Shown: positions 1-39,647 of the stretch, piece by piece | Layout: each line of letters starts with the position of its first letter | How positions within the stretch are numbered: position 1 is the first letter of the stretch | Source of the DNA: Takakia lepidozioides | Lineage: Eukaryota > Plantae > Bryophyta | NCBI GenBank assembly: GCA_030704615.1 | Contig: CM060733.1 | Span: 10,850,001 to 10,914,000, forward strand | Direction: 5' to 3' | Length of the DNA stretch: 64,000 bases | Program-made: the position numbers and the translations under genes | Notes under the pieces: generated by a model | What the model was told of the DNA's origin: nothing | Seen by the model: only the letters and a program-made list of their open reading frames with translations | Databases searched by the model: none

Positions 1-2542
1 GCATCATTTATGCTCCCACATTTGGCATACATAGCAACAAGGGCGCAGTCCAGAATGATATCTGGCTGAATTCCAGCTTTGATGAAGTCAGCATGGACCT
101 CTCTGCCCTTTTCCAGGGCCCCTAGGCTGGAGCATGCCTTCACAGCGCAAATGAAGGTAACCCGGTCAGGCATTACCCCTTCCTGTATCATTTGCTCATA
201 GGTTTCCAAAGCCTCCCTACCGCACCCATGCTGAGCATATCCTGTGATCATTGCATTCCACGAGACCACAGCTCGTTGAGCCATATTGTCAAACACTTTA
301 CGTGCATCCGTCATGCTCCTACATTTGGCATACATGTCTATTAAGGTATTCTCCAGGGTTACATTGGGCATAATTCTGGCTTTGATGATGTCAGCATGAA
401 CCTCTTTGGCCTTTTCCAGGGCTCCCAAGCTGACACATGCCTTCAGAGCACAGAGGAAGGTGACACGGTCAGGCATAAACCCTTCCCCTATCATTTTCTC
501 ATATGTATCCAGGGCCTTCCTACCATACCCATGTTTGGCATATCCTGCCATGAGTATAGTCCATGTAAACATATTCCGTTCAGGCATTTTGTCAAACACT
601 AGGCGTGCATCCACAACACTCCCACACTTTGCATACATATTGATGAGGGTGTTGTATAAAAAGAGGTTTGGCTTAAATCCGTTTTGGATTATGTGGGCAT
701 GCACCTGCTTTCCGTCTGCTAGGCCTTTCATCCTGATGCACTCCTGCAGGAGATAGATATAAGTATTGGAGTCTGCCGAAATGCCTTGTTCGTTCAAATT
801 CTGCAACACATGCCTCAGTTGTCCTGCCTTACACAGTGTCCTCACAATCCCACTAGTGCCAGAGGAGTTCTTGTGGACTTCCTCTCTTGGTCCTCTTTCA
901 AAATCGGTTGTCATGGTGGACGTCCCTGGTTCAAACAAATATGTTGCCACTGCTTCCAGTTGACCCTCTATCCATGCAGGTTTCTTGTAGCTATCAACCC
1001 ACAGTCCCTCGTTGGCACTCTTGTGCTTGAAATCTGGTCCTCTGGGACGGATCTGCAACCATAGTCCATCCTGCCTCCAATAACAAGATCCCATCCTATG
1101 CTGAATTGCTGGCAAAAGCGTGTGAGGGAGAGGCAGATAATGACATTTTACAAGAAAGTTTTTCAAAGCATCTTGTTGTCTGCCTCGGCTGTAACATAAC
1201 AGGCATCAACCTTTCTGCCTCAATTGTTCCTCCAGTGACTCTGGTTTGAAACACGTTCCTTCCAAACATTCTCCTTGTCTCTATTTTGGCTTTTAGAATA
1301 GTTGCCTGCAATCCCAATAGCAACATGTCAAAAACTCAGATCATCAGAGATACCCTACGAGCTACCTTACCAAGCCAATGATAAAAATGCAGTCTACTTG
1401 CTGTGTAAGCGAACCCCAGGTGGAAAAGGGGAAAAGAAAGAGGCATGAAAAAGGGGTAAACTCAATCACCTGATCCATCTGATAAAGAAACCCATGAAAT
1501 TCTTAACGTACTGTTACGACACTTACCCCTAGCTGCATCCAGTGTTTGCAATTCACCCTCCACCCAAGAAACATTGCTATCAATCCATAGAGTGTCATCT
1601 GCACTCTTGTGCTTGAAGTTTGGTCTTCTAGGATGAATCTGCACTTCGCACTCAATCCATTCAGCTATTATGGTCTCCACAACAAAAAAAAAAGTACAGA
1701 TTCTCCCTCACTGCAAGTAGCAACAATAACATTCCCTACTTTATATAGCAGCATCCACCCCTAACTACCAAATCCTAGCTCCTATGGCAAATCTGTGGCG
1801 AGACTTAGAAACAGTGTGAAAAGGATGGCTGGAAAACGTCGGCTCCGGAATACCCTATCGTACAAGCGATAGGGTATTGTTTGAAGGGCTGGCATTGGTA
1901 TCATATTGGGAGCACGCTATTGATATCAGCTGTGCTACATCATCCCTCCATCTATGACGCATGTGGGTTGCTGCAATACCAGTTGCACTTCGCCCAGTAC
2001 AGAAAGGGAGAGAAATGTTGTCACGTGCAACCTTGGAACCGGTTCGAGGTGAGACGGACTGGAATCCCCATAGCGTTCGGGTGCAGCCAAGGACAATTCG
2101 GTTACAGGGATTTGAGTGATGATCAGTGGCAGTGCCTTCGTACTAAATTAACTGATGATCCAGCACTTGCTCAACAAATGTAACAAATTTGAACGTGCTT
2201 GCACTGCCAGTCAAGGTTAGAGGAGGAGAGAGAATGTACTCACGAGACGTTGTACACTTCGAGAGAGAGAGAGGCCAGCATCATTAATTGGAGAGAAAGC
2301 TTATCTCTGCTTCTGCTCTAACATTAACAGACATTCACCTTAACCGCTGGATAGTTCCACCATTGGCGGGGGTTTCCATAACATTCGACCCAATTCTCCA
2401 CGACTGCATTTTGTGTTTTTCGATTTTTGCGTTTGTGGCCTCGTTGCTCCACCCCCCGCTCGTAAAGTTGGTCCTTTCCTGGTGGTCTCCAGCGCCGCCC
2501 AATTGGCTTGAAACCGGTTGCAGTCCAATTGGGAAGATGCAC
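1..2542 (-). CDS. PPR gene A: PLS-class pentatricopeptide protein with two N-terminal OSB-type PDF motifs; 3' end runs off the window, start uncertain, one in-frame TGA at 1222-1220
   Basis: Exons: ?-2339 (VENWVECYGNPRQWWNYPAVK|gtgaat), 1638-1527 (IHPRRPNFKHKSADDTLWIDSNVSWVEGEL), 1305-1211 (ENVWKERVSNQSHWRNN*GRK|gt), and 1052-<1 (IRPRGPDFKHKSANEGLWVDSYKKPAWIEGQL...MTTDFE...LLQECIRMKGLADGKQVHAH...MYAKCGSVVDAR). The PPR frame is absent from the ORF track because it has no stop inside the window. Confidence 0.8.
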
Positions 2543-4809
2543 ATGGATCCCATCAGGAGTGTACAGCCCACAATTTGAAGCTCTCAGCAGAGGGCCAGGG
2601 TTGTGAGGGCATCCCGAGAAGCCTTCAGCACATGTAGAGGGAGTCCAGCATGCTTAGCAAATGAGCTGCAATGGCTGCTCATTCTTCAGCACTTCGAATA
2701 CAACACACAGTCTGGAGACGGAGCAAATACTCTGGAACATTCTCCTAAGAAATGAGCCTTCAGTTCAGGCAGGGTTTGGTCGTTCGGTCTGTCCCACCTG
2801 GATTCTGTTATTGGAAATTTGGTTGTGGACTTGGATCGACAAGAAATGATCAGAACAAAAATTTACAGGCACCTCATTTGGGTTTCTATAAAGCTTTACA
2901 GAGTTGTATACGCCAATTCTTGTGAAATGTTCCTTTGAGGGTGAGTTCGAAGGATGCTACTCTTTCCGCGATGACGCACCCGTACTTTCACTGCAGTTGA
3001 ATTTGATTGTCTGATCGATGTGGGAGTGCAAAGACTTGAAACATAGAATTTGAATTTCATATGAGCTACAGTGTACACAGTGATTTGACCGTACAGATCT
3101 TCCCAGTTGTTGTGCTTCCAAAGCTTTTCACAAGTCCCCTGATATCTTGTGTAATAGAAGAACGGGTACTATGCTTGCTGCACCAGCAATCTTGTGCAAT
3201 CAGTAATAAGGATTTCGTCCTACAACTTGAGTGCTGCTTTTGGTATACCTGGTGACAGAAATCATAAATTTCCTTGCTACCTCACCTCCCAAGTCTGTAC
3301 AAGGTGTAGACAAGAGAGGCAAAAGCCATGTCAAACTGTTCTATAAACCTCTTCACAGAACATATTAGAAGCTGAGAAAGGCCGCAAAGGGTAAGAAGCA
3401 GCCATGGCCTACACACCATAACTTTGGGGCAAAAGAGACTGAAGGCACAGAAAAAACCCTCAAAAACTCTGGTCATGAACTCTCTCTCAGTCTTAGGTGG
3501 ACAAACAGCAGAATGACATGTCCACCAAGGCAGCCATCGCTACAAGCACCTTGCATTAAGGGAGACTGAACATGAAATAATCATTTACTGCATGAGAAAG
3601 TGTGTACATGTGGGAAAATATGCATACCCCATGTCAGGGGTTGCATTTCCGTGACAGTACTATCTGTTAAAATCTTTGAACTTTCCAGCTTACCTTAAAG
3701 CATAAAATTAAATGCAAAACCTTCGCTTGCATCTAAGCTCAGAAAAACAAAGAAATGCTCAAGGGAACAGGAAACATATTTTGGTGATCAAATAATGGGC
3801 CTAGACACCTGGACTTGCTGGTGCGGCTAATCTCCACTCCTTACGTCTTGGCCATCTGATAGTCATCCAATAACACACCCTCAACTGAGCGTGATGAAGG
3901 CAAGGCCTCATTCAGGGGCCACAGTTGACATACGTCACCCAAGCCTGACTGAGTCAAAGAGTCGGGCCGAAGCGCAGGGCGATAATACAACATACACCAT
4001 AAAAACTCTCGCAGTGTCATGATGATGACGCAGCCCATCTCAACTCATCGCAGCACCTGCATTTCCTAACAGCAGCTACTGCCATGCCTCTCCTACCACT
4101 ACAGCATAAGATGGGAGGCGAATAGTACTCAAATGACTGTAGCACATACAGCCTATAAATCGACATCAAACTCAGCCTAGAAAGGATACTTCCATAACCA
4201 AGTCACACTACCTTCAAGGAGGAAGCACCGAAGATAGGAAAGGGAACCTCTTAACAACTCACCTGCAATACAAAATATTCCATCGAAGTCAAGCAATAAG
4301 TCTTAGCTCTCTGGTTCCATAAAAAATAGAAAGCAACCAAGATTGCAAGATCAATGAGGATTCCTACTAAAGTAGGTGGCATAACTAAATACCATGAAGC
4401 CCACCTGAACAGGAATCTTGGAGCACAGAGGCAGCAGCTGTAGAAAGACAACACCAGCACAGCATGAACAACCATTGGACGTAGTATTAAACCAAACAAG
4501 ATCAACTGTGAGTAAGCTTGAGATTCACTTTGATAACTATGTTTGGCAGACCTCATCTGCAAGAATGCAAACATTCCTATACAAAGAACTTTATGTGACA
4601 CTCATGCGAACAAACAGACACAACAAGACACAATCGAGGCAAACCCACTGGAAAATGTCATGCAGACACCATGGCTGCTCCGAATTTGAGTGAAAGATTC
4701 AGGTTTTGTCGCGATTCTCATCCACCTTTTGCTCTCATCTCTTGGCAACAATGTAGTGTATGCCTCCTTCTGACCTCACGCCTTATTGCAGGTGAAGCAG
4801 TTGGGCTCC

Positions 4810-16994: not shown

Positions 16995-17046
<52 letters not shown>

Positions 17047-18760: not shown

Positions 18761-20861
18761 ACACCTTGTATTCCCTTCTTTTTCGCTGGGGCAAGCAGGG
18801 TGTATGAGTGATGGTACACGAAGGTACTAGAGAGGCTCACCGGTTCTGAAGTTTAACCTCAATGAGAGTTGAGAGATCCAATCACAAGGCATGGGCTCCC
18901 TCTCTTCCGCAAAGGTTCTCTCTAACACCAAGGGTCTGTTTCTATGATTGGAGAGCCAGTTTGTGAATTAGGGAAATGCAGCCCTGGTATGGAACATCAA
19001 CACCGTAAGATTTGAACTTCAGTACCAGATATAGAGATGCGGCTGGTCAGCCAAAAGTACGGAAACCTTCTTTGAGGTATTCACCCTCCCCCTGCCCTTC
19101 GGAGAATGCAGACAGATGCAGACTATTACATCTGATCACAAGGGTATCAGATCACTGCCTTGCAATTCAAACAGGTGGATGAACTTCACCTCCACGACCT
19201 TCACCTCAAAGGGAACATTATACTAAGTGTCCGTTGTCACTTGTTCTATCTCTTGTTAGCAAGTTGCACAATTGGAATTAGAAGTCAGTGAATGTGCGAT
19301 GGAATTGATTTGCTCATGCTCAATGCACGGTCAGTAGATCCTTGAAGCATACCTTCGGATGCCAGGATTGATCCAAGTTGAGTCATCTCCTCATTTCTCT
19401 ATTGATCTCCCATACCATCCTCTGTTCCTGCAGTATCTGAATTTTGTCCCATTTTCTCCTTGCTCTACTAGGAACTGTGAGTGCACCACTACATCATAAT
19501 GGAGAGTCGGCCCACCGGGAGGCCGGCACAGGTGAAGCAAAGTCCGTGCTAGTACTTTCCTACGCAACAATCGCTTTGTCAAGCCCAGATTTGATGCAAT
19601 GTTAGCAAGCTTAGCTTCTAAAATAATACACATGTCGCAGATAGTGTAAGAATTGTGTACAGAGCCTCCGTGTGTAACCAATTCCACAATTGTGGCTCCA
19701 CCTTCCCAGGTAGCATTGCAGATGCAGTTGCCACCTTCATAGAGCTTATTAAAAATATGTTTGCCAGGCTACCCCTTCAAGGCGCTGGAGGACTATGTGG
19801 TTTATGCAAAGGAATACACCATGGCTGTGGATGCTTCATAGTGTTGCAAACACCCTGATATTACCATGTATGTAGTACACTTCTTGTTGTACAGAGTTGT
19901 TGTCCAAAGCAGCCTGTTATAAGATCCAGGGCTCCATGACAGCACACTGGTGGAATCTCAGCAGTGCGGGTGCTATTGTTAGTGTCGTCAGAAATTGTTT
20001 AGGTGAAGATGCACATAAAGAGGATGACTTTTTGGAGTGATCATATCAGATGATGACCTTTATTCAGTGGTTATCTCTATCATGCATACAGCAAGTTGAA
20101 CCTCACAGAGGGCTTAAGCAGTGTTGTTCTTGTATTACATTTTTCACATGGCAGCCGGGTCTAAACATTATTGTCTTGAAAGTTTTTTATACTCATAGCT
20201 GGTCCTAAGTATCTCAAAACAAAAATGTGTTTGATACCAGTCTGCTCTAAATACTGGATCAAAATCTCAAAATGAACTACCTAGTATCAAGTATCAACCT
20301 GGACTTAATATGTTTCCAGGGCTGGAAATGGGGCATCTTATAGATTCTATCCCAGTTTTTAACTTCATAAAACAAAAATTCACCATGAGATTTTCCCACC
20401 ATTGTTAGATGAACGGCCAGAGGATAGGCCCATAGGCTCTTCTACTATATATATTGGACAGAGCTCGGAGGGAGGAACGATAGCTTGTCTAAAGGTATGA
20501 AAGCCTCGTGATGCAAGACTCTCTCGTTCAGTCCATGGCTGCTCAGCTGCCCCATGGCTGGTTTCATAGCAATATCCAAGATCGCCAGACGTCAGACATA
20601 AGAACAAGGGAGGTCCTTTGGATTGAATGTTGGTCGAACCCTCCTTGGGTGAGAGAAGAGCTATCTGTGAAGATACAAGATGGAACAGAGTCTAGTGATT
20701 GTTCTGATGTGGATTTACGCCATGCTGCTCCAGTCCGAGAAGACGACGGGTATTTTTCTGAAAATGGAATTGACGCAGTTTTCCTAAATGTATAGGACTG
20801 CAATTGTTTTGTGATGCTGTTTTGTGGCAAGGACCCTGTCATTATGGAGTGATCTTACAGG

Positions 20862-23075
20862 ATGGCAGGTTTGAATCAATTACAAATGTTTGTTGACAGG
20901 GGTGGCACCTCCATCACCACCACTGCTTTTAAAACAATAGAGAGGGTCAACAAGGACTCTTCTGGCACTTGTAAGAATGTGAGAATGTTGTCTAAGGCAG
21001 GACAACTGAAAGAGGCATTGCACATTTTGAAGCAAATGGGCATTCAGGTGGACTCCACTACCTATGTCTGTCTCTTGCAGGAGTGCATCAACATAAAAGG
21101 CCTAGCAGAGGGAAAGCAGGTCCATGCCCACATAATCCAAAGTGGATTTAAGCCAAGTAAGTTTATACTCAACACCCTCGTCAACATGTATGCCAAATGC
21201 GGGAGCATCGTGGATGCACGCCGAATGTTTGACAAAATTCGTGAACGAGATATTTTCACGTGGACGATGATGATAGCAGGATATGCCAAGCATGGGTTTG
21301 GTAGGGAGGCTTGCAATCTCTACGAGGTAATGCAACAGGAAGGGGTCACACCCAACAGGGTCACGTTCATTTGTGTTCTCAATGCCTGTGCCAGCCTTGG
21401 AGCCCTGAAGAAAGGCAAGGAGGTCCATGCTGATATCATTAAAGGTGGAATTTCACCAGATATTGTTATAGAGAATACCCTAGTCCACATGTATTCCAAG
21501 TGTGGAAGCCTGAAGGATGCACGTCAAGTGTTAGATAATATGGCTACACGGAATGTGGTCTCTTGGAGTGCAATGATTGCAGGGTATGCTCAGCATGGTT
21601 GTGGTAGGGAGGCTTTTATGATCTACGAGCAAATGCAAAGGGAAGGGGTGATGCCCAACAGGGTTACTTTCATTTGCATCCTGGATGCATGTGTAAGCCT
21701 AGGAGCTCTGGAAAAGGGCAAAAATGTCCATGCAGACATCATCAAAGCTGAGATTTTGCCAGATATAAATTTGGAGACTGCCCTTTCTGACATGTATGCC
21801 AAATGCAGCAGCATGAAAGATGCGCTTAGAGTCTTTGACAATATGGCTAATCGAAATGTTGTATCATGGAGCGTCATGATTGCAGGATATACTCAACATG
21901 GCTACAGTAGGGAAGCTTTCAAGATCTATGAGCAAATGATTCAGGAAGGGGTGAGGCCAGACAAGGTTACATTCAACTGTGTTCTCAATGCCTGTGCCAG
22001 TCTAGGAGCCCTGGAAAAGGGCAAAGAGGTCCATGCTGATATGAGCAAAAGAAAAGTTGCACCGGATATCATTCTGGAGAATACCCTTGTTGACATGTAT
22101 TGCAAATGTGGCAGTGTAAAGGATGCGCGTCAAGTGTTTGACAATATGCTTCACCGGGATGTGGTGTCATGGAATGCCATGATTGCTGGGTATGCTCAGC
22201 AAGGGTGTAGTAGGGAGGCCCTCCAATTATCTGAGCAAATGCAACGGGAAGGCTTTAAGCTAGATGGTATTACCTTTGTGTCTGTTCTGTCTGCATGTAG
22301 CCATGTGGGCCTAGTGGATGAAGGTCATCACTACTTTGATTCCATGAGCCGATATCATGGTCTCACTCCTATGGTGGAGCATTTTGGCTGCATGGTGGAC
22401 CTCCTTGGCCGTGCAGGGCGATTGGATGAGGCGGAGGACTTCATTGTAAAAATGCCAGTGGAACCAGGTGCTTCGGTGTGGGGGGGGCCGTGCAGGATTC
22501 ATGGCGATGTGAAGATAGCAGAACGTGCAGCAAAATGTCTTATCAAGAGTGACCCACAGCATGCTGGGAGTTACGTGCTGCTATCTAACATCTATGCCGC
22601 GGCTGGCAGGTGGGATGAGAAAGCCAAGGTGAGAAAATTGATGGAGGAGAGAGGCGCCAGAAAGGAGGCAGGGCACAGCTGCATTGAGGTGGACAACCGG
22701 GTGCATATGTTTGTTGTAGAAGACAAACTGCACCCACAGATTGAGGAAATTCATGCTGAGCTGAAGAGATTGTCTTGGCAGATGAAGGAGGCTGGGTACG
22801 TGCCTGATACACGCTTTGTATTGCATGATGTAGAGGAAGAGCAAAAGGAGCTTTCTCTTTGCCACCACAGTGAGAAGCTGGCCATTGCTTTTGGCCTCAT
22901 CAAAACACCCCCAAGTACTCCTATCCATGTCATAAAAAACCTTCGGGTGTGTGGTGACTGCCACACTGCCAGCAAGTTCATCTCAAAGATTGTTGGGCGA
23001 GAAATTGTTTTACGGGACGCCAGCCGCTTCCACCACTTCCAAGATGGGGTTTGTTCTTGTGGGGATTACTGGTGA
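20862..23075 (+). CDS. PPR gene B: PLS-E1-E2-DYW protein (4 S-P units); upstream PDF-motif exon 20570-20749 is frameshifted
   Basis: 737-aa ORF with a 101-aa PLS period, HSEKLA, CGDCH and CSCGDYW. The upstream exon reads YPRSPDVRHK, then after a 2-bp deletion TREVLWIECWSNPPWVREEL. Confidence 0.93.
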
Positions 23076-24459
23076 AACAAGATAATATGATACTTCAATC
23101 AGTAAATCTGGCTGAAGGGACCCAAGCATAGCTGTGTCGCGACATATTCTCCACCTGTATGTTCATGAAGTGGGGACAACGTGGACAAGACACCAATCAT
23201 CCTGTTTGGGCAGTTACAGCATGGGCTCACCATAGAGGAGATCTGTTGATTGGTGCTAACCCCTCCACAAGTTTGCACGGTACACCCTCGAACTCTTCGC
23301 TTGAACTGTTGTGGAACTTTCCTGGATTTGATAACAGCCTCCCAGGGCAGACTCAGAAATCCAGGAAAGTCCTGGGGTAAGAATTTTGTCATAAAGAATT
23401 GCTCAAAACCTTTCCCCTGCCCATGCCTGGGTTATGAAAATGCTGGACTGTAATCCAATATCCTTCTTCCCCGAGCCACATAATCCTTCTGCTTGGGGAG
23501 GTCAGTATAGTTACAAAATGAATTTTTGAGTAGTGCTTACAGGAGCCATAATGCTGTCCAGGAACTTGAGCGCTGGTGTACCACATGTGAATTGCTAGTG
23601 GTACCACTTGTTGGAATGACGGATCTTGGTCCAAACCCATCTTTATTAAACCTCAAGATGGAGCCTATTCCCAACATTGAAATGATTGTGGAAATGAGGT
23701 GCAGACTGCACAGAGGATGGGCATGCGATCGTATGTGGTGGCCTTGCTGTCATGGCTGAATTTCCTACTTTGTGAGCTCCTTGCATACATGCTACCAAGT
23801 CTCTAGAGAGAGTTTCGATCTTGCCTTTCACTGATCAATTTGACAGATATGTGCAGGCAGCAAAGGAGGTGGGGTCCTATATGGTTGAACGAAGATAACT
23901 TCTATTAGTTTGTTGCTGCTTTACCAAAAGAGGCAAGTACTCTTTAGTCCTCTGTGAACTGACAGTTAGAGTGAGAAGGCATGTGATGCTACACAGCCCC
24001 ATTTACTGCTGAGTGCAAGTGGCAAGGCCAAGATAATCTATCTGCCAATGCCTGGTTGTCTCAACAGACACTCAGGTTTCTTAGAGCTCTCTCCAATCCA
24101 CCACCAAAGATCTTGACATAAGTTTTGGACCACTGAACTCCCTTCTTGGTTCAACCCTCAACATTGTTTTGAGTTGTCATGATTCCCTTAATAATATTGG
24201 ACAACTCTTTCAAACAAGCTCATCTTGCCGGTCGGTGTGCTCCAACAACTGTGTTGCTAGCTGCTGCCTTCACTTGACCATCCACCCACAAAGGTTTCTT
24301 GTACATAGCTATGAATCCATAGCTGCTTGTTGGCACTAATGTGCTTCAAATCTGTTCCTCCAGACTGATGGTTGTGCCTCGATTGTCCCATAGTTGACTG
24401 AAGTTCGAAAAACTCTCCACACACCTAGAGCTGCACATCCGAAACTTCTGAAAACACCT

Positions 24460-24600
24460 AACGAAGAACCTCAGATAATGTGGTGACTGCCACCAAGTCA
24501 ATCGCAAAGACTGTTGGTTGAACTAGTGTGATATGGGGTCGCTTCACCACTTCCAAGATGGGCTTTGGTCTTGTAGGGACAAGATATAGAGACAAGAGAC
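24460..24600 (+). pseudogene. Degenerate remnant of a DYW-domain 3' end
   Basis: aagaacctcagataatgtggtgactgccac...cgcttcaccacttccaagatgggctttggtcttgtagggac matches KNLR.CGDCH...[10 protein letters not shown] of the neighbouring genes, with stops and indels. Confidence 0.85.
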
Positions 24601-25288: not shown

Positions 25289-28200
25289 ATGGCGAAGTGC
25301 TGCGCGGCTCTCCTGAGCGCGCAGCTAGAATCCACACCCAAGACGCCGCCTTCTTCTTGCGATGCACAGGCGGAAGGACTCACAGCAGGCAGCAGATTAG
25401 CTGGGCAGGCTGTGGAGCTGAAATGGGCATCCACCTTGGCAATGTCGGACCAGAGATCCTTGCAAGTGTTGGATACTCCGGCATACAATTCTGCAGGGAG
25501 ACCGAAGACAGGTGTGTGGACATGGACTTTTTTGAGGTTGCTAAATTGTGTGCGTCAGAGGCATCCAGGCTCCAAATTGCCCTTGACCCATGTCAGCAGA
25601 AACTGGTGAAAGATGTCAACTGCATGATCATATAAGGGCAGATGAACTTGAGTATATGTTCACTCTGTTATCCTACTCGATCAGCTTCTTCAGGACATCC
25701 TTTGGCATCTGTTGCGTCTGGTTGCCTTAGTTGATTTGAATTCATTGCATAAGAGAGGAACTTATTTACATTGCTAGCTTGGGGCCATTGTCCCTGTGGG
25801 ATACCCTGGTACTTTGGGAATGGGCATCGGTTTTCTCTCAGGGTGGGAGTTACGCCATAGCTCGCGCATAGTTGATGGAATTCCCTGTCCCTGCTCCAAG
25901 AGGTGGAAGCATATTGAGCTAACTAGCCCTCAACTTACCACACATGTAACATACAGTGCTGTAGTCCGTTTGCAGAATCGTAACTGCAAATGCCGGTCAC
26001 ACCCAGGTATGGAGAAGTGCGGGGAGAGAGAGAGTGTGTATAGTTTTGGGAACAACCAACACAGCTAGTATTGGCAATATGACTCGGAGATCCTAAGGAC
26101 CTGTGTTTGCCCGTGGTTCCATGCAGACCCAGATCCTTCGCAGTGGTGGGACAACAGGTTTGATAAGGTGAGTCTACCTTATATTAGTACACAGTCCTTT
26201 CTCTTCCTAGAACAAATTCCTTTCCTAAGCTAGGCCGGTCATCTGTGTCTATGGACTGGTGTCATGGTTTCCATTGCTAATCCACAATAGCGGTGAAGTT
26301 GGTTTCGTCAAAGTTGAGGCCTGCTGTTTCAAGAGGTGCTACTGGAGTTTTGGAAGTTGTGGCCTGGTTTATGTGATGTTGTAGTTGAAGCTATAGCTGC
26401 TGAGCTGCCCACTCTGGGGTTTCACAGAAAACTCCGAGATCACCAGACTTCAGACATATGCTCACAAAGGAGGTCCCTTGGATTGAGGATGGGTCAAGCC
26501 CCCTCCAGGTGAAAGCAGAGCTAGCGGCCATGATACAAGGTGGAGCACACTATGGTGATGATTCCAATGTCAATGTCCGCCATGGAGCTCCAAGCCAAGA
26601 ATACACCCGGTATTGTGTTGATGATGATGATGATGATTCAAGGAATTCAACGCAAGTAGATAGAATGGTACAGTATATTCTGACTCTATTTGTGACTGCA
26701 CCACTTGTGCACCCTTGTTGATATGTACTAAGAAGCTATGTCATAACGGGACATTTCTTTGAGTAGTACGACATTTGAGATATCTGTGTGAGTTTCAGCT
26801 AAAAGGTTTGTAGCTAACAGTTTTCATTCATGCAGGATAGCAGGGTTTCGTGAGGCACAGGTGCTTGTTGGACATCCGACTGGCGGTAGGGATAGCACCT
26901 CCACTGTTGCCACTGTTTGTGAACAAGTGCCCCGAGCGGAAGTCAAGAAGAACTCTTCTAGCACTTGGGGAAGTATGAAGACCCGATGTAAGGCAGGCCC
27001 ACTGCAAGAGGCATTGCTCACTTTGAACCGGGGAGGGATGCGGGCGGACTCCAATACGTATGTCTGTCTCTTGCAGGAGTGCATCAACATGAAAGACCTT
27101 GCAGAGGGGAAGCAGGTGCATGCCCACATTATCCAAACTGGATTCAAGCCAAACGTCTTTCTTTTCAACACCCTTATCAACATGTATGCCAAGTGTGGGA
27201 GCTTGGTGGATGCACGACAAGTGTTTGACAAAATTCCTGAACGAGATATGTTTTCATGGACTATGATGATGGCAGGATATGCCAAGCATGGGCATGCTGA
27301 GGATGCTTTGAATATCTATGCGCAAATGCAACAGGAAGGACTCACACCTGATAGGGTTACGTTTATATGCATTCTCAAGACATGTGCAAGCCTAGGTGCC
27401 CTGGAAAAGGGTAAGGAGGTCCATGGTCACATCATCAAAGCTGGAATTGGGTCATATGTTAATTTGGAGAATAGCCTTGTTGACATGTATGCCAAATGCG
27501 GGAGCATCAAGGATGCACGTCAAGTTTTTGACAATATGGTTACACGTGATGTGGTCTCGTGGAGTGCGATGATCATAGGATATGCTCAGCATGGGTGTGG
27601 TAGGGAGGCTTTCGAGATCTATGAGGACATGCAACTTGAAGGGGTGACCCCTGACAGGGTCACCTTCATTTGTGTTCTGAATGCCTGTGCAAGCTTAGGA
27701 GCCCTGGAGAAGGGCAGACAGGTCCATGGTGCTATCATCAAAGCTGGAGTTGGGTCATATATTAATCTGGAAAACAGCCTTGTTGATATGTATGCTAAAT
27801 GCGGGAGCATGAAGGATGCACGTAGAGTTTTTGACAAGATGCCTAAAAGAGATGTGGTCTCGTGGAATGCTGTAATTGCAGGATATTCTCAGCCTGGATA
27901 TGGTAGGGAGGCTTTGAAGATCTATGAGCGAATGCAACGACAAGGGGTTGTGCCTGACAGGGTCACGTTTATTTGTGTTCTAAATGCATGTGCCAGCCTA
28001 GGAGTCCTAGACAAGGGCAAGCAGGTCCATGCTGACATCATGAAAACTGTAATTGAGTTGGATATTATTCTGGAGACTGCTCTTGTTGACATGTATGCCA
28101 AATGCGGGAGCATGAAGGATGCACGTCAAGTGTTTGACAATATGGTTGAACGAAATGTGGTCTCATGGAGTACAATGATCGCAGGATATGCGCATCATGG

Positions 28201-29383
28201 GTTTGGTAAGGAGGCTTTTGGATTCTACGCGCAAATGCAATTGGAAGGGGTGACACCCGACAGGGTCACATTTATTTGTGTTCTCAATGCATGTGCTACC
28301 CTGGGAGCCCTGGAAAAGGGAAAAGAAGTCCATGCTGATATCATCAAAGATGGAATTGCCTCATACACCAAGTTGGAGAATACACTTGTTGACATGTATG
28401 CCAAATGTGGGAGCATAAAGGATGCACGTCAGGTATTTGATGAAATGGCTGAACGAGATGTGGTCTCGTGGACTGCAATGATCGCAGGATATGCCCAGCA
28501 TGGGCTAGGGACAGAGGCTCTGCAATTGTTTGAAAAAATGCAACAAGAAAACTTGAAGCCGAATGGTATCACCTTTATATCTCTTCTATCTGCTTGTAGC
28601 CATGTGGGCCTGGTGGAAGAAGGTCGCCATTACTTTGACTCCATGAGTTTGGATTGTGGTCTCACTCCTACACTCGAACATTTTGGCTGCATGGTGGACA
28701 TTCTTGGCCGTGCAGGGCGATTGAAAGAGGCAGAGGACTTTATTGATACAATGCCTATTGAACCAGATGCTTCTGTGTGGGGGGCCTTGCTTGGTGCCTG
28801 CAGAATTCATGGCAATGTGAAGCTAGCAGAACGTTCGGCAAAAAGTGTTCTCAAGTGTGAACCGCAGCACGCTGCAGCTTATGTGCTGCTATCAAATATT
28901 TATGCTGTGGCTGGCAGGTGGGAGAGTAGAGCAAAGGTGAGGAAAATAATGGAGGAAAGAGGTGTCAGAAAGGATTCAGGCCGCAGCTGCATTGAGATTG
29001 ACAATGAGGTCCATACATTCTTTGCAGAAGACAAATTGCATCCACAAATTGGGGAAATCCACGCTGAGCTAAGGAGCTTGTCTGGGCGGATGAAAGATGC
29101 CGGTTACGTGCCTGATACGCGCTTTGTGTTGCATGAATTGGAGGAAGATCAAAAGGAACTTTCTCTGTGCTACCACAGTGAGAGGCTGGCCATTGCTTAT
29201 GGGCTCATCAGCGCGCCCCCTGGGACACCAATCCGTGTCATTAAGAACCTTCGGGTGTGTGGTGACTGCCACAGTGCCACCAAGTTCATCTCAAAGATTG
29301 TCGGGCGAGCAGTTGTTGTACGGGATGCAAACCGCTTTCATCACTTCCAAGATGGGGTTTGCTCTTGTGGGGATTACTGGTGA
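25289..29383 (+). CDS. PPR gene C: leader + PDF motif + PLS-E1-E2-DYW protein (5 S-P units), 4 exons, frame fully open
   Basis: Exons 25289-25511 (MAKCCAALLSAQLES...VELKWAS, phase 1), 26127-26167 ([14 protein letters not shown]|gtgagt), 26428-26609 (KTPRSPDFRHMLTKEVPWIE...VKAEL, phase 2) and 26836-29383 (IAGFREAQVLVGH...HSERLA...CGDCH...CSCGDYW). Splice phases join without stops. Confidence 0.9.
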
Positions 29384-30445: not shown

Positions 30446-33400
30446 TCACCAGTAATCCCCACAGGAACAAGCCCCATCATGGAAGTGGTGAAAGCGGTTG
30501 GCATCTCGTACAACAATTTCCCGGCCAACAACCTTGCAGATGAATTTGGTGGCAGTGTGGCAGTCACCACACACCCTAAGGTTCTTGATTATACGGATAG
30601 GCGTCCCAGGGGTAGTGCTTATGAGCCCATAAGCAATGGCCAGCTTCTCACTGTGGTAGCAAAGAGAAACTTCTTTTTGCTCCTCCTCCACATCATGCAA
30701 TACAAAGCGTGTATCAGGTACGTATCCGGCCTCCTTCATCTGCTCCGCCAACCTCTTTAGCTCAACATGGATTTCTTGGATTTGAGGATGTGACTTGTCT
30801 TCTACAACAAATGTATGCACGCAGCTGTTGACCTCAATGCAGCTGCGACCTGGCTCCTTCCTGATGCCTCTTTCCTCCATCAATTTTCTCACCTTTGTTT
30901 TTTCATCCCATCTGCCAGCTGCAGCATAGATGTTCGAAAGGAGCACGTAAGCTGCAGCGTTTTGTGGATCTGTCATGAGAATGCTTTTTGCCGCATGTTC
31001 TGCTAGCACCATATCACCGTGAATTCTGCAGGCACTGAGCAAGGCCCCCCACACTGAAGCATCCGGTTCCATAGGCATTGTGCTAATGAAGTACTCAGCC
31101 TCACCCAATCGGCCTGCACGGCCAAGAAGGTCCACCATGCAGCCAAAGTGCTCCAGTGTAGGAGTGAGGCCATAATCTCGACTCATGGAATCAAAGAAAT
31201 GACGGGCTTCCTCCAATAGGCCAACATGACTGCATGCAGAGAGAAGAGATACAAAAGTGATGCCATTTGGCTTCAAGCCTTCCTGTTGCATTTTGTCAAA
31301 GAGTCGTAGGGCCTCCCAACCATACCCATGCTGTGCACATCCTGCGATCATTGCACTCCATGAGACCACGTCTCGCTGGGCCATATTGTCGAACACTTGT
31401 CGCGCATCCTTCATGCTCCCACATTTTGCATACATGTCTACAAGGGTATTTTCTAAATTTACATATGGTGCAATTCTAGCCTTGATGATGTCAGCATGGA
31501 CCTCTTTACCCCTATCCAGGACTCCTAAGTTGGCACATGCATTGAGAATGCAAATGAATGTGACCTTGTCAGGAGTCACTCCTTCCCTGTGCATTTGTTC
31601 ATAGATTCTGAAAGCTTCCTTAATATACCCATGCTGGGCATACCCTGCGATCATTGCACTCCATGAGACCACATTTCGTTTGGCCATATTGTCAAACACT
31701 TGTCGCGCATCCTTCATGCTCCCGCATTTAGCATACATGTCAACAAGGCTATTCTCCAAGATAATTTCTGACACAATTCCAGCTTTGATGGCGTCAGCAT
31801 GAACCTCTCTGCCCTTTTCCAGGGTTCCCAGGCTGGCACATGCATTGAGAACACAAGTGAATGTGACCTGGTCGGGCATCAGCCTTTCGTGTTGCAATTG
31901 CTCATAGACCTGCAAAGCCTCTCTACCACACCCCTGCTGAGCATATCCTGCAATCATGGCATTCCATGAGACCAGATCTCGTTTTACCATATTGTCAAAC
32001 ACTTGACGCGCCTCCTTGATGCTCCGGCATTGGCCATAATGTTAATAAGGCTGTTTTCCAGATTAATATATGAAGCAATTCCAGTTTCATAGGTTCAATG
32101 TGGATGTGTTTGCCCTTTTCCAAGGATCCTAGAGTGGCACATGAATTCACAACAGAAATAAAAGTGACCCTGTCAGGCATTACCCCATCTGCTTGCATCT
32201 GCTCATACATCTTGCAAGCCTCATCACCACAGCCATGCTGAGCATATCCGGCAATGATTGCATTCAATGACACCACATCTCGTTCGGGCATATTGTCAAA
32301 CACTTGCCGGGCATCCTGCATGCTCACACATTTGGCATACATGTCAACAAGGTTATTTTCCAAATTAATATACGGGGCAATTCCAGCGTTGATGATGTCA
32401 GAATGGACAGCATTAACCGTTTGCAGGGCTCCTAGGCTTGCACACGCAATGAGAACACATACGAACGTGACCTTGTTGGGGATCACCCCTTTCCATTTCA
32501 TTTGCTCATAGATCTAAAAAGATCCCCTAGCACACCCATTCTTTGTATACCCTGCCATCATCATAGTCCACGAAAACATATCTCGTTCAGGCATGTTGTC
32601 AAACACTTGGCGTGCATCTTGAAGGCATCTGCATCTGGAATACAATATTATAAGAGTGTTCAGCAGAAAGATGCTTGGCTTGAATCCACTTTGGACAATG
32701 TGGGCATGCACCTGCTTTCCCTTTGCAACGTCCTTCACATTGATACACTCCTGCAAGAGACAGACGTAAGTATTGGAGTCAACCTGAATGTCTTGTTGGT
32801 TCAAGATGTTCAGTGATTCCTTCAGCTGTCCTGCCTTGCATAGGATCTTAACATCCAAACAAGTTCTAGAAGTGTTCATGTTGACTCCTCTTGGTCCTCC
32901 TTACGAAGAAGTGGTGATATTGAAGGTGGTATGCTGGCTGCCAGTCTGATGTCTATCAAACAACCATTCCTGATTCAAACCTGTCAACCTGCATGATTCA
33001 AACTTTCAGTTTCAAAACTTGGAGACTGTGACTCAGGTATATCTGTTCAAAGCTAATATTCAAAGAATCATCATGAGGAGAGGTTTCTTAATACTTTGGT
33101 TGCAAAATGACGGGAGTCATCTAATTTGAGAATAAACCATACCAATTCATTCTACCTTTTATATTCTTGGCCTAGAGCTCCATCATGTACATCGACATTA
33201 GAGGTAGCACCAGACTGTACTGGACCTTGCATCATGGCAGCCAGCTCTGCTTTCACCCAAGGGGGATTCGACCAACTCTCAATCCACCGGACGTCCTTCG
33301 TGCACTTATGTATGAAGTCTGGTGATCTTGGACTTCTCTGTGGAACCCCCAGTGGAGAGCAACTGAGCAGCCATAGCTTCAACCACAGCTTGTGCAAACC

Positions 33401-34562
33401 AGGACTACAACTACCAAAGCTGCTAAACAAGAAGCGCCTACTGATGCCAAGGTCATAACCAAAGCTGCCTATCATGATGAAGAGCGAATTGTCATTTATC
33501 TAAGCAAATAGAGACACAATCCAGTCCACAAAATGTCATCGTGACCTTCCTCCACAAAGTCTTTCACTCCCACTGATGATAGCCTCACCTTATCAAACCT
33601 GTTGTCCCACCACTGTGAAGGATTTGAAAAGAACTCCTGCCAGAGGAGTTCGGTGGGTCATGGATTGACCTGCATGTCAAAAGTGCAAAGAAGAGTATTA
33701 TGCCACATTGCGGTGGCCTCATTCCTTATAAAGAGTGCTAGGTGTAGGTTGGCTAACATTTGAAGCACAAAAGAAAAAGATGTTGCACAAGACACTGAGA
33801 ATGTGGTGGAGAGACTGCCCTCCAAACCAGGCTGATCGTGGGTCATACTCACATTTCTCCATAGACGGTCTTTGACCAGACTCAGAGCTTGGACCATAAT
33901 CTGCCACCCCGGCAGAATCTGGACTGCCATCTTGAAACTTCAACGGAGATCCGACATTTACACCGGAATTAGAGCTGTACTCTGATATCCATCCCCCATC
34001 GCACTGCGCTCGATCTGGTGTCATGGTAGCTAGCTCTGCCATCACTCAACCGGGATATCAAGGGCTATGACTGCAAGCTAGCCATTTACTTGAGTATCTC
34101 TCAATGAAATGAAAGCAATATACCAGAAGTCTAGATGCTACAGGAGCTAATGGAGGAGGACAAGGGTGTACATTATTCTCACATTCCTTAGAGCCTCTGT
34201 ATGACGATACTTCGAACTTTTTCCACCAAAATGGCTGTAGCTTCTGCTGGTATGGGTCAAGGCCAATTTGGAAACCTGGATAGCTCCGAGGCTCACAATT
34301 TTGAGACCCAAATATAACGCAAATGAATCCATGTCTACCTATAGTCTATACCTTTCTTCGGACTTGCTGGAGGTTGGAGCAGGGTCATCACAACTTGCGA
34401 GGATCTCGGTCCCGGTATTGCCGAGGTGGATGCCAGTTTCAACTCCATAGCCTGGCTCTTCAATCTGCTGCATGATGTGAGGTCCCCCGCCCTTTCAGCA
34501 CTGGGAGTGATTGGTCTGGCCTCTGGCTGCGTGCTCACAAGAGCCCATGAGCCTGCTACCAT
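30446..34562 (-). pseudogene. PPR gene D: disrupted PDF-PLS-DYW paralogue; the 3' 518 codons including the DYW domain remain open
   Basis: Exons 34562-34352 (MVAGSWALVSTQPEA...MELKLAS), 33669-33589 ([21 protein letters not shown], 81 bp, a +1 frameshift), 33337-33156 (RSPRSPDFIHK...WSNPPWVKAEL) and about 32988-30446. Lesions in the last exon: in-frame TAA 32903-32901, TAG 32516-32514, and frameshifts near 32085 and 32030. Confidence 0.88.
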
Positions 34563-34709
34563 CGCTCGCCAGAGGAAAACAACAAGACATACTATCGATT
34601 TTTGTAGCAGTAGGGAGATCGTTCCCGTGTGCCAGTATTTGTAGACTTTACAGGAAGTGGTGTTTTTGCTTTTCTTAGAAGAAAATCAAATGGGTAACGG
34701 CAGTTCAAT

Positions 34710-35150
34710 CCATGATGGCCCCCCTTTGGGCTGTGCAATCCGTTCGATTTCTTCTTCATGGGTTCCGGGTGGGCTCCCACAACCTACGAATAGAGACTGG
34801 CAGATGACAAAACCTGCAGCGGGAGGACCGCCTATGTCCTGCTTGCACAGGGGGAATTGAAACTGAAGAACACTTCTTCTCTATACTACGAGATGCGTGG
34901 GAGATTCCACTGTCTATTCCGCGGAACCCAATCTCTCACTGAAGTCTTCCACTATGAGGATCAGAAATGCTTGGCAGCTTACCTGCAAGAGGCACTCCCC
35001 TTTTAGACAATCACTCGAGCAATAGTTTTTATCTTTGGCTCTGGTTTTGTTTCCTCTCTCGTGTTTTCTTCCATTTTGTCCCATAAGCTCTATGAGCTTG
35101 AGTCAGCGGACGTTATACAGCACCATTTCATTTCATTTCATTTCATTTCA
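34710..35150 (+). mobile_element. 3' fragment of non-LTR retrotransposon family B with (CATTT)n tail
   Basis: Near-identical to 48110-48530 (ggttccgggtgggctcccacaacctac...gaagaacacttcttc...gaggatcagaaatg) and ends in catttcatttcatttcatttca. Confidence 0.85.
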
Positions 35151-35814
35151 ATTATGGGAGTATGAGTAGTGGTCACTCTGGAATGGAACCTCAATTTACT
35201 GGACACCACACTACCAAAGCAGTCGGTCATTGAAAGCAACAGCTGGGAGCGAAGTCACGCTTCATGCCAACCTCCAGATCTGATCTTTGAGCACAGTTCA
35301 CATCCAGCTTCTTTTCCAAATTGTATTCCATGGTGGACAAAGTACCAACAACTAAAATCATTTGTCGACTTAATAGAACTGCAAATGCGACTCTTGCATT
35401 GCAATTCTGGGGGGGCTGCGTATCCAGTAGAGAAGAATCAATCTGAAAGCCTCTCCACTCTTGTGGCCTCTAGAAAGTGTCAACAAGTATAGGGAAAATT
35501 GGAAGAAGGCATCTTCTCAAATCATTATCCTCTGAACACCCACCCACTCTTTCTGATTCTTTTGGAAATCCTTGTTTAACTTTTTGTACAGCATAGTCTA
35601 TTCATATCTTCACGGGACTTCACTGGTGCTGTTTGATAATCATACTTACCATAAAATATGATCATCACCATTGGCAGCTCACAAAAATGTGGCACTGCCT
35701 GTCCCACTGAATGACAATCAATTACTAGTTCTCACTTCACTCTTTGCTCTTTAAATAATGGCCTTTCCTTTACTGCGTTGAGCAACCTGTGTCCTTTCTT
35801 GCATGTTGCTTGTT

Positions 35815-38800
35815 TCACCAGTAATCTCCGCAAGAACAAACCCCATCTTGGAAGTGGTGAAAGCGGTTGGCGTCCCGCAGAACAACTGCTCTCCCAACAA
35901 TCTTTGAGATGAGCTTGGTGGCAGTGTGGCAGTCACCACACACCCTAAGGTTCTTCATGACGCGAATAGGCATCCCAGGGGGAGTGCTGATGAGCCCAAA
36001 AGCAATGGCCAGCTTCTCACTGTGGTGGTACAGAGAAGATTCCCTTTGCTCCTCCTCCACATCATGCAGTAGAAAGTGTGTCCCTGGCACATACCCGGCC
36101 TCCTTCATTTGTCCAGACAATCTCTTCAGCTCGGCATGGATTTCCTCAATTTGAGGGTGCAATTTATCTTCTACAACAAATGTATGCACCCGATTGTTGA
36201 CCTCAATGCAGCTGCGACCTGGCTCCTTTCTTACACCTCTGTCCTCCATCATTTTTCTCACCTTTGTTTTCTCATCCCGTCTGCCAGCTGCAGCATAAAT
36301 GTTTGAAAGCAGTACATAAGCTGCAGCATTCTGTGGATCTGCATTGAGAATGCTTTTCGCCACACGTTCTGCTAGCTCCATATCACCATGAATTCTACAG
36401 GCACCAAGCAAGGCCCCCCACACTGAAGCCTCCGGTTTGATAGGCATTGTGTTAATGAAGTTCTCTGCTTCATCCAGTCGTCCTGCACGGCCAAGAAGGT
36501 CCACCATGCAGCCAAAGTGCTCCAGTGTAGGAGTGAGGCCATGATCTGGAGTCATGGAATCAAACAAGTGACGACCTTCTTCCACTAGGCCCAGTTGGCT
36601 ACATGCTGAGAGAAGAGAAGTAAAGGTGACACCATTCGGCTTCAAGCCTTCCTCTTGCATTTTTTCAAACATCTGCAGGGCCTCACGGCCACACCCATGC
36701 TGGGCACATCCTGCAATCATCGCACTCCATGACACCACATCTCTCTTTGCCATACTGTCAAACATTTTGTGTGCATCCTCCAGGCTCCCACATTTCGCAT
36801 ACATGTCAACAAGGGAATTTTGAAGCATGATATCTGACACAATTCCAGCTTTGATGATGTTAGCATGAACCTCTTTGCCCATTTCCAGGCCTCCTAGACT
36901 TGCACATACATTAAGAATGCAAGTAAATGTGACATTATTGGGCATCACCTGTTCGTGTTGTAGTAGCTCATACATTTCAAATGCCTCCCTACCACAGCCA
37001 TGTTGGGCATATCCTGCAATCATGGTGTTCCATGAGACCACATCCCGTTTGGCCATATTGTCGAACACTTGACGTGCATCTTTCATACTACCGCATTTGG
37101 AATACATGTCAACTATGCTATTCTCTAGATTGACATATGACACAAGTCCAGCTTTTAAGATCTCATTATGAACCTGTTTGCCCTCTTCCAGGGCTCCTAG
37201 GCTGGCACATGCATTCACAACGCAAATGAATGTGATCCTGTCAGGTGTGACTCCCTCCTGTTGCATTTGCTTATAAATCACCAAAGCCTCCCTACCACAC
37301 CCATGCTGAGCATATCCAGCAATCATTGCACTGCATGAGACCACATCGCGTTTAGCTATGTTGTCAAACACTTGACGCGCATCCTTCATGCTCCCACATT
37401 TTGCATACATGCCAACAAGGCTATTCTCCAAATTAATGTATGGTACTACCCCAAGTTTGATGATGTCAGCATGGACTTGTTTGCCCTTTTCCAGGGATCC
37501 TAGGCTGGCACATGCATTAAGAACACAAATGAATGTGACACTGTCAGATGTCACTCCTTCCGCTTGCATTCGCTCAAAGATCTCGAAAGCCTCCTTACCA
37601 CAACCATGATGAGCATATCCTGCAATCATAGCATTCCATGAGAACACATCTCGTTTGAGCATACGGTCAAACACTTGATGGGCATCCTTCATGCTCCCAC
37701 ATTTGGCATACATGTTGACAAGGGCATTCTCCAGATTAATGTATGAGGCAATTCCAGCTGTGATAATATCAGAATGGACCTCTCTGCCCTTATCCAGGGC
37801 TCCTAAGCTTGCAGATGCATTGAGAAGACATATAAATGTGACTCTGTCTGGGGCCACTCCTTCCCATTTCATTTGCTCATAGAGTTTGAAAACCTTCTCG
37901 GCATGCCCGTGCTTTGCGTATCCTGCCATTATTATAGTCCACGTAATCATATCTCGTTCAGGCATTTTGTCAAACAATAGATGTGCATCCACCAGATTCC
38001 CGCACTTGGCATACATGTTCACAAGGGTGTTGAGTAGAAAGATATTTGGCTTGAATCCACTATGAACAATGTGGGTGTGCACCTGCTTTCCCTTTTCTAG
38101 GTCTTCTGTGTCGATGCACTCCTGCAAGAGACATACATAGGTCTTGGAGTCTGCCCGAATGCCTGATTGGCTCAAAATATGCAGCGCCTCTCTCAGTTTT
38201 CCTGCCTTACATAGTGTCCTCACATCCATAGAGATGCCAGAATGGTTTTTCTTGACTCCTTCTCTTCGGCCGCCCTCAAAAGTGGTCATGGTGGAGGTGC
38301 TGACCCTGCATGAGTCAACCCTGTTGGTCCTGCATGACTCAAAACCCTTGGTTGCAAACCTTTACCATACTGTCTCAAGGCACCTAGATTTTCAGAGACA
38401 GATAATTATTCACGAGGAAAGGCTTCTTGCTACACATTAACAAAATTACACAACCACTGCAGTCATCTGCTGGAGAATAAACCATACAAATTCTATCTAT
38501 CTGAGTCCAAGCCCTTGATACTCATCATCACATACCTGTCATGTTTTTCTCCTAGAATTCCATGGTGTGTAGTGACTTTAGAGCCATCACCGGATTGTGC
38601 TTGTATTACGTCAGTTAGTTCTGCTTTCACCCATGAGGGGTTCAACCTACTCTCAACCCAAAGGACCTGCTTTGAGCTCTTATGTCTGAAGTCTGGTGCT
38701 CTTCGATTTCTCTGACCACAACAGATGCACAGCTCAGCAGTTATAGCTTTAACCCCAGTCCAGTATAGATCAGGCTATAAACACCAGTGTCTCCTCAATT

Positions 38801-39647
38801 AACAGGCCAGCAAAAAGACTACTGATCCAACCAACAATCAGAAACTCTACAACAGGTATAACATACAAGAATCTCATTACTGGCAACTGAAACCATGATC
38901 CACTGTGCAAAATGAAATCAAACAAGATTCACTGCGGAAAAGGCCACTACCAGTATATCCTAGAAACTACAAATTATTGGGTAACAACTCACCTTATTAG
39001 ACCTGTTGTCCCACCACTGTGAAGGATCTGCCATGAAGTCCTCCCAAAGCCGTTCTATGCTTACTGCTTGAGCTGAGCGCAAACAACATATATTCAGAAC
39101 TTCAGTTTCTTCTTTGGGGATGCTAGTGTCGGCTTTCTACAAAATTAGTGCCTTTCCCTCTTCTGCCAATTTTTCAGTCGGCCTTCACTGTCAAACTGCT
39201 GCTCCACAGGGATCACAGCAATGTGGGTAAAATCTGTGACAGTTAAATAAACGACTAAGCTAGAATGCTTGCACCGGGATTTCCATAGGCTATGTGCGAG
39301 CTGGTCATAATATGCTACAGGGGTTATACTGATCTCCAAGGTAGTGAAGTTAGTACAACAGAATTTGCATACGACTAAAGTGATGCAAACGGGTGTCAAT
39401 TACGCTCGCATTCCTCTACAATCCTTGTATGTGCACTATGTGGACTCTTGGACCGATTTCTGCAAGGATGATGCGAGGTCAATTTGGAGCCTGGATTCAC
39501 TGCGACGCGTACAATTTACAGAATTGTAAGTAAATTCATCTCTATACCTTCCTCCGGGTCTGCTGAAGCCTGAGGAGGCGGGGAAGCCATCAGTTGCGGG
39601 GTTTTCGGTCCCGGAAACGCCATTTTGGATGCCAGTTTCAGCTCCAT
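35815..39647 (-). CDS. PPR gene E: complete PDF motif + PLS-E1-E2-DYW protein (5 S-P units), 4 exons
   Basis: Exons 39647-39548 (MELKLASK..., phase 1), 39072-38993 ([26 protein letters not shown]|gtgagt), 38711-38536 ([32 protein letters not shown], phase 2) and 38329-35815 ([18 protein letters not shown]...EPGRSCIEV...HSEKLA...CGDCH...CSCGDYW). The ancestral ATG near 39767 is out of frame. Confidence 0.9.

Follow-up and report, generated by a model that had tools for sequence, protein, structure and literature searches.

A cluster of five PPR-type organelle RNA-editing genes (A-E) lies in the 64,000-nucleotide stretch of Takakia lepidozioides DNA analysed here (the window), and it descends from an old liverwort, moss and clubmoss family that bears an OSB-type module, the PDF motif, at its N-terminal end. 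The genes are best read as C-to-U RNA editors of the ordinary type to which an accessory module has been added; this module is predicted to bind single-stranded nucleic acid and appears to be dispensable in many copies. As an earlier note on this DNA had claimed, PDF sequence is found 5' of the PPR array in all five genes, although its state differs from gene to gene. The motif is both complete and in an open frame in E alone; it is damaged or lost in the other four copies, of which B and C still have intact DYW frames, indicating that the PDF is an accessory part. The PDF-PPR architecture is not limited to this cluster or to the Takakia genome, and no description of it was found in the literature searched.

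Gene E (minus strand) is composed of four exons. The coding part of exon 1 (39548..39647) begins at the ATG at 39647, and an RNA-like contig (X1, 39783-39548) ends exactly at its donor. Exon 2 (38993..39072) encodes the N-terminal half of the PDF motif, including helix 1 and WWDNR, and has a phase-0 donor after a lysine; exon 3 (38536..38711) encodes the C-terminal half and a linker; and exon 4 (35815..38305, with an alternative in-frame acceptor at 38329) encodes the PLS-PPR array, E1/E2/E+ and an intact DYW domain (HSEKLA, CGDCH and a terminal DYW). Splicing of 39647-39548, 39072-38993, 38711-38536 and 38305 (or 38329)-35815 gives an open frame of 948 or 956 amino acids. In-frame stops at 39740 and 39719 separate the ancestral start, ATG 39767, from the rest of the frame, which leaves E with an N-terminal peptide some 40 codons short of those in C and D and makes import of the E protein uncertain. 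The transcript check that had been proposed was borne out in part: the exons of E are covered by RNA-like contigs and the intron bins are not, but the exon 2-3 and 3-4 (PDF-to-PPR) joints are absent among the listed read joints.

In gene C (25289..29383, plus strand), joining exons 25289-25511, 26127-26167, 26428-26609 and 26836-29383 yields an open frame of 997 amino acids, so that the open spliced frames described earlier for C and E are both confirmed; all introns of the two genes are GT-AG with phases 1, 0 and 2. Helix 1 and the final conserved tryptophan are missing from the PDF of C; the DYW domain of this gene is intact. Gene D (30446..34562, minus strand) follows the four-exon plan of E and is a pseudogene: its PDF motif is well preserved and complete, but exon 2 does not continue the reading frame, exon 4 is interrupted by stops and frameshifts, and the DYW domain is present in a broken frame; exon 1 still lies under an RNA-like contig. 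The PDF peptides quoted in the earlier note were all located, at 39058-38993 and 38711-38613 (minus) for E, 33651-33589 and 33337-33236 (minus) for D, and 26129-26167 and 26428-26529 (plus) for C.

Gene B (plus strand) contains an intact PLS-PPR-E-DYW open reading frame of 737 amino acids with its own ATG (20862..23075) and a frameshifted remnant of the PDF C-half (20571..20670) with 78% DNA identity to exon 3 of E (E-value 7e-17). Homologs of exons 1 and 2 were sought upstream of B and none were found. Gene A (minus strand) carries two split PDF motifs. The first (1527..2398) is divided by a 700-nt phase-0 intron into a divergent N-half (2398-2339) and a C-half exon (1638-1527). The N-half of the second (1211..1305) contains an in-frame TGA at 1222-1220, and the last exon (1..1052) holds the PDF C-half and the PPR array in one exon and one frame, open for 350 amino acids to the window edge. 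The proposed fusion of the PDF to PLS-PPR(-DYW) proteins is supported for the family; the C-terminus of A, with any DYW domain, lies beyond the edge. A decayed intron-less PDF fragment closest to the PDF of A is also present (24264..24417, minus strand), opposite a decayed DYW fragment on the plus strand (~24460-24585).

The homology of these sequences to the PDF motif of OSB proteins is supported by profile, predicted fold, a shared intron and independent genomes. The profile comparison with OSBs for which the earlier note had called was carried out on unspliced exons using an HMM whose 169 PDF motifs came solely from SSB-domain (OSB) proteins, and both this HMM and hhalign match the exons individually. 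Scores per exon pair were 39.5/35.8 bits for E (exon 3 and exon 2, respectively), 36.6/28.8 for D, 33.1/31.7 for A, 20.5/18.2 for C and 11.0/9.6 for B, the last being at the chance limit; the best score among 20 shuffled windows was 10.5 bits, and this control rules out chance similarity. The separate exons of E matched the OSB motifs with hhalign probabilities of 98.7% (exon 2) and 98.5% (exon 3). The module is predicted to be a folded 56-residue alpha/beta unit (AlphaFold pLDDT 87.4), and the Atlas cluster nearest to this model is a plant SSB (PF00436) family (TM 0.89, rmsd 1.0). The core residues W, W/D/R, K, P/F/H/K, L/W and P/W show 89-99% conservation among 165 fused motifs, compared with 68-100% among 177 OSB motifs. 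A phase-0 intron after WWDxRxxK is shared by the window genes, a Calypogeia fusion gene and an OSB gene; the PDFs of an OSB1-like gene (L006) lack an intron, so this feature is not universal in OSBs. No solved relatives of the PDF were identified by PDB sequence, Foldseek or VIA searches (best Z 2.6), and an ESM Atlas feature search was blank. Pfam contains no model for the motif, which is therefore missed in domain scans.

The cluster proteins are not OSB proteins. They share with OSBs the PDF profile (hhalign 99.9%), the predicted fold, the invariant residues and the internal phase-0 intron. However, the PDF of OSBs is C-terminal to the OB fold, whereas in the fusions it is N-terminal to the PPRs, and the N-terminal SSB/OB-fold domain of OSBs is absent from all 134 database fusions and, using an SSB HMM built from OSBs, from the window. 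Mis-joining of a neighbouring OSB gene and a PPR gene was rejected because the window has no SSB domain, and it is also ruled out by genes with PDF and PPR in one exon (the last exon of A, and Calypogeia and Sphagnum genes) and by the database fusion P0219, which is one open reading frame on one contig.

Downstream of the PDF the proteins resemble established editors, in which the PPR array recognizes the RNA by sequence and the target C is deaminated by the DYW domain. E, C and B contain P-L-S repeats with Pfam PPR matches and 5/last pairs ND, TD, SD, NN, SN and TN, together with PF20431, PF20430 and PF14432 (E1/E2/E+, and DYW with HxE and CxxC). The likeness to PGW-type PLS-PPR-E-DYW editors such as Physcomitrium PPR56 extends over the P-L-S triplets, canonical 5/last residues, E1/E2/E+, a PG-box-like motif and, in B, C, D and E, the HxE and CxxC zinc motifs and terminal DYW; the window genes, as candidate editors, differ in adding an N-terminal PDF from two extra exons. 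A U-to-C type of editor was rejected, since the window DYWs have the signature HSE[KR]LA...DYW and the U-to-C (DYW:KP) signature, an HAE-type motif with GRP/DRP/KP termini, is absent from them and from all 134 fusions. In Escherichia coli, PPR56 is active as an editor when no more than 14 residues precede its first PPR (PMC10482289), and a PDF-like module is therefore not needed for editing; PPR56 editing is also inhibited by RNA structure (PMC10482289). An accessory nucleic-acid or helper domain on a PPR protein has parallels in PPR-SMR proteins and in PPR fusions with RRM, MORF and RanBP2 zinc-finger domains (PMC13386178), and that kingdom-wide survey of PPR fusions does not mention OSB or PDF.

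A search for proteins combining PDF with PPR/DYW, also proposed earlier, retrieved 134 database proteins, with Calypogeia, Sphagnum and Diphasiastrum as the organisms named. A DYW core is present in 54; about 60% of the fetched fusions lack one as annotated. Tandem PDFs (two or three) occur in 30 of the 134, and likewise in OSBs, and no database protein with both SSB and PPR was found. The OSB comparison set was drawn from a full HMMER scan; a homolog search sized for OSBs gave almost only short fusions. Of the 30 fused PDFs in the PDF tree, 27 fall into a single group (SH-aLRT 93); a tail motif occurs in 92 of 130 fusions versus none of 61 OSBs. Identity across liverwort, moss and lycophyte is 64-71% for the PDF compared with 48-56% for the adjoining PPRs, a contrast biased by the choice of homologs by their PDF. 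In an unrooted E-DYW tree from a biased sample, a 100/99 branch unites the window genes, long-linker Diphasiastrum fusions and PDF-less Ginkgo and angiosperm proteins, and PDF monophyly is recovered in 18% of bootstrap trees.

With moderate confidence, we favour the interpretation that these are nuclear PLS-PPR C-to-U editors whose ancestor captured an OSB PDF that adds a grip on single strands. An OSB-type gene of early land plants would have supplied this ancestor with a single PDF module that already contained the intron; homology, the shared intron and the presence in liverwort, moss and lycophyte argue for the capture, from which we infer a single early origin. The PDF would most likely add sequence-independent affinity for single-stranded nucleic acid, contacting either the stretch of RNA that lies 5' to the PPR footprint or the ssDNA of nucleoids and transcription sites, and could thereby raise the local editor concentration or keep the target unfolded. 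Judging from sequence, tethering or added affinity of this kind may be its role. The PDF motif of AtOSB1 alone is enough for ssDNA binding (PMC6963530), and the preference of OSB1 and OSB2 for ssDNA over RNA (PMC4166229) argues against the RNA-clamp version. A wider scenario is rather doubtful: the PDF would have been an ancestral land-plant editor part that tied C-to-U editing to nucleoids or nascent transcripts, would have been retained and multiplied in the liverwort, moss and clubmoss lineages, and would have disappeared from seed plants with the rise of MORF-type helpers. The branch that joins PDF-less Ginkgo and angiosperm proteins to the window genes in the E-DYW tree, and the N-terminal cap repeat retained in Ginkgo proteins, would fit it.

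The PDF might instead cap the PPR solenoid structurally at its N-terminus or mediate protein interactions, as a built-in stabilizer in MORF-less plants that does not bind nucleic acid. This model-based proposal would suit the compact Calypogeia/Sphagnum form, in which some 10 residues separate the PDF from the first P motif, the AlphaFold prediction of the PDF with the first repeats (pLDDT 92, linker ordered at 85-90, pTM 0.75) and the restriction of MORFs to seed plants (PMC13386178), in which database searches revealed no PDF-PPR fusions. However, the linker is longer and intron-containing in the window genes, tandem PDFs recur as in OSBs, and the basic and aromatic residues of OSB are kept, so we regard a cap as unlikely. 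A functionless relic of a captured OSB 5' region or promoter would agree with the four damaged local copies, B and C among them, and with Ginkgo relatives that have the same N-terminal cap repeat without a PDF. It is improbable for the family, because the PDF is better conserved across lineages than the adjoining PPRs; in addition, its core residues are near-invariant across the fused motifs and the OSB PDF, being C-terminal, lies outside the 5' end. The earlier suggestion of a relic of an OSB-like 5' end fits all the local copies but E, and is unlikely for a family conserved in liverwort, moss and lycophyte. That the PDF steers DYW-mediated deamination to organellar ssDNA and so makes the protein a programmable DNA cytidine deaminase is highly improbable, and the earlier proposal to this effect found no support: the PDF prefers ssDNA (PMC4166229) and designer P-type PPRs are able to bind it (as cited in PMC9508816), but the PPR code, PG box, E motifs and DYW resemble those of ordinary RNA editors, many fusions have no annotated DYW core and no DYW activity on DNA was found in the literature searched.

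Well over 100 editing-factor-like proteins annotated in public databases for seed-free plants carry a conserved, so far unnamed N-terminal domain, probably overlooked for want of a Pfam model. If the PDF binds single-stranded nucleic acid, it would allow a direct test of where editing occurs, whether at the nucleoid or co-transcriptionally, and of how structured targets are handled in MORF-less plants, and this 56-residue unit could be appended to engineered PPR editors.

Five PLS-class PPR genes lie in the window, A (-), B (+), C (+), D (-) and E (-), with unrelated genes interspersed and with A extending past the window start. [quoted passage not shown] Gene B has an intact PPR-DYW ORF (737 aa) with only a frameshifted PDF C-half upstream, D follows the exon plan of E and C with exon 2 out of frame and with stops and frameshifts in exon 4, A has two PDF motifs interrupted at one identical site, the second with a TGA at 1222-1220, and the motif of C lacks its first helix and last Trp. 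Computational joining of the exons of E and C, as a frame check only, gave open frames, as the earlier note has it; they measure 948 or 956 aa and 997 aa, respectively, with three GT-AG introns each in phases 1, 0 and 2. In E two in-frame stops come after an older start codon (39767), so that its N-terminal peptide is 40 codons shorter than in C and D. A decayed intron-less PDF fragment at 24264-24417 (-), with 75% DNA identity to the last-exon PDF of A, adjoins, in back-to-back orientation, the decayed remains of a DYW domain at about 24460-24585 (+); a sixth PDF-PPR copy probably left both pieces.

A profile (A1) built from PPR-fused motifs only matched 1,229 representatives, and an SSB-like domain occurs in 65-68 of the best 150 (Pfam-confirmed on samples). 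In the reverse search, an HMM from 169 OSB-only motifs gave 18-40 bits on the window's unspliced exons, with matches breaking at the intron position (maximum for shuffled windows 10.5 bits); the gene B remnant is borderline (11.0 and 9.6 bits) but matches exon 3 of E at 78% DNA identity. Fused and OSB PDF profiles aligned in hhalign at 99.9% (E-value 1e-36), and exons 2 and 3 of E taken singly reached 98.7 and 98.5% against OSB motifs. The two approaches agree, exon by exon, with the original identification of the motif as the OSB PDF, whose 50 residues are enough for binding ssDNA, in a family whose members OSB1 and OSB2 prefer ssDNA over dsDNA or RNA (PMC6963530, PMC4166229, PMC6451138). An AlphaFold model of the PDF is compact (helix, three short strands, helix; pLDDT 87.4), and the Atlas cluster closest to it is that of a plant SSB-family protein (TM 0.89); solved structures yielded no match. 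The model also matches uncharacterised phage (Uroviricota) clusters of 187-199 aa in the ESM Atlas (TM 0.76 and 0.67), from which the fold may derive or to which it may be related. Database proteins P0204-P0207, P0212 and P0217 carry 6-11 tandem PDF motifs, with neither an SSB nor a PPR domain detected. The window's genes and a Calypogeia fusion gene both have a phase-0 intron after WWDxRxxK. An OSB gene has it too, in three of its four repeats, with an intron displaced by two codons in the fourth; this sharing points to capture of the PDF at the DNA level from an OSB-type gene.

The fusion is evident without reliance on splicing in gene A, where the C-half of the second PDF shares the last exon and a frame with the PPR array. 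Exon 4 of the Calypogeia gene holds a PDF C-half and the entire PPR-DYW, a Sphagnum gene has the PDF and first PPR within one exon, and database protein P0219 (locus L007) is one ORF of 1371 aa on one contig and combines three PDFs with PPRs and an E motif. Two runs, probably RNA, were examined as contigs over 33950-39900 at 90% likeness, so that paralogs add to depth. Depth falls on exons 1-4 of E and is zero in wholly intronic bins, and a contig with 99% identity to exon 1 of E stops exactly at the predicted donor 39548. Given the paralog depth, and with the exon 2-3 and 3-4 joints not among the matches listed, the full splice path of E is a supported prediction. Exon 1 of pseudogene D (34352-34627, -), covered by a contig from run X1 that ends at splice donor 34352 and carries a 4-nt deletion at 34528, is apparently still transcribed, and polymorphic. 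A 400-nt repeat between D and E (34761-35142), 85% identical to a copy at 48130-48529, is covered to a very high depth by contigs of either run.

Pfam also identified a zf-C3H1 finger (PF10650) in a large multi-exon gene at 4810-15800 (-), which we take to resemble ZFC3H1/Red1-like proteins, a DnaJ-domain exon (PF00226) at 18290-18760 (+) and a LINE-type reverse transcriptase fragment (PF00078) at 54436-56800, to which copies at 43900-45700, 49150-49420, 52190-52470 and 53770-54230 are related (several 70-93% identical). Exons at about 41000-54000 (+), broken up by repeats, presumably belong to a plant beta-galactosidase gene, going by motifs.

Takakia lepidozioides is a moss with a 325 Mb genome (PMC13120521) and 2,016 PPR genes (PMC13386178). 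A PDF-region search of long proteins gave 125 matches; all 120 matches listed contain PPR domains, with Diphasiastrum complanatum (the majority), Calypogeia fissa and several Sphagnum species as named sources, and seed-plant fusions were absent from the search matches. The proteome check suggested earlier was positive: among all proteins fetched, 134 combine PDF and PPR (54 with a DYW core, 30 with two or three PDFs), and none of these 134 joins SSB to PPR. A tail motif directly follows the PDF in 92 of 130 fusions versus 0 of 61 OSBs. In the PDF tree, which has only 59 columns, 27 of the 30 fused PDFs cluster together (SH-aLRT 93, a branch without a star); the three PDFs of P0219 lie outside this cluster, and this protein may represent a second, independent capture. 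Identity between lineages is 64-71% for the PDF versus 48-56% for the next repeats, a contrast biased upward by selection of homologs by their PDF. In the unrooted E-DYW tree, the four genes of the window cluster together (100/97), and a 100/99 branch joins them to seed-plant proteins that have no PDF and to Diphasiastrum fusions with a long linker; loss of the PDF in seed plants is a hypothesis only, since this tree is unrooted and drawn without PDF-less bryophyte editors. Ginkgo and the other seed-plant PPR proteins retrieved bear no PDF trace.

In genes B, C and E the PPR code pairs are canonical and the E/DYW motifs intact, and the PDF core residues are conserved. The window fusions share those features of PLS-DYW editors that sequence could check and putatively work like them; OSB identity was ruled out, as the OB fold is absent. 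Since a PPR array lies on its RNA with the N-terminus on the 5' side, a module at that end would sit upstream of the footprint, far from the DYW site. We lean towards the reading that the PDF adds non-specific single-strand affinity, which would tether the editor to nucleoids or keep the RNA open. A structural cap or interaction module is an unlikely second choice, with which a compact modelled form of the fusion with an ordered linker (pTM 0.75) would agree. Slightly less probable again is a relic, an alternative already raised in the earlier note that is true of most copies in the window but unlikely for the family as a whole. PDF-guided DNA deamination by the DYW domain found no support and is highly improbable.

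The literature searched (subscription papers being outside its scope) contained no description of the PDF-PPR combination, nor are OSB or PDF mentioned in a survey from 2026 of domain fusions in editing factors (PMC13386178); the variant is apparently undescribed so far. Judged from its sequences, PDF-PPR is a real, old variant of PPR editing factors with a putative function, one intact copy of which lies in the window.
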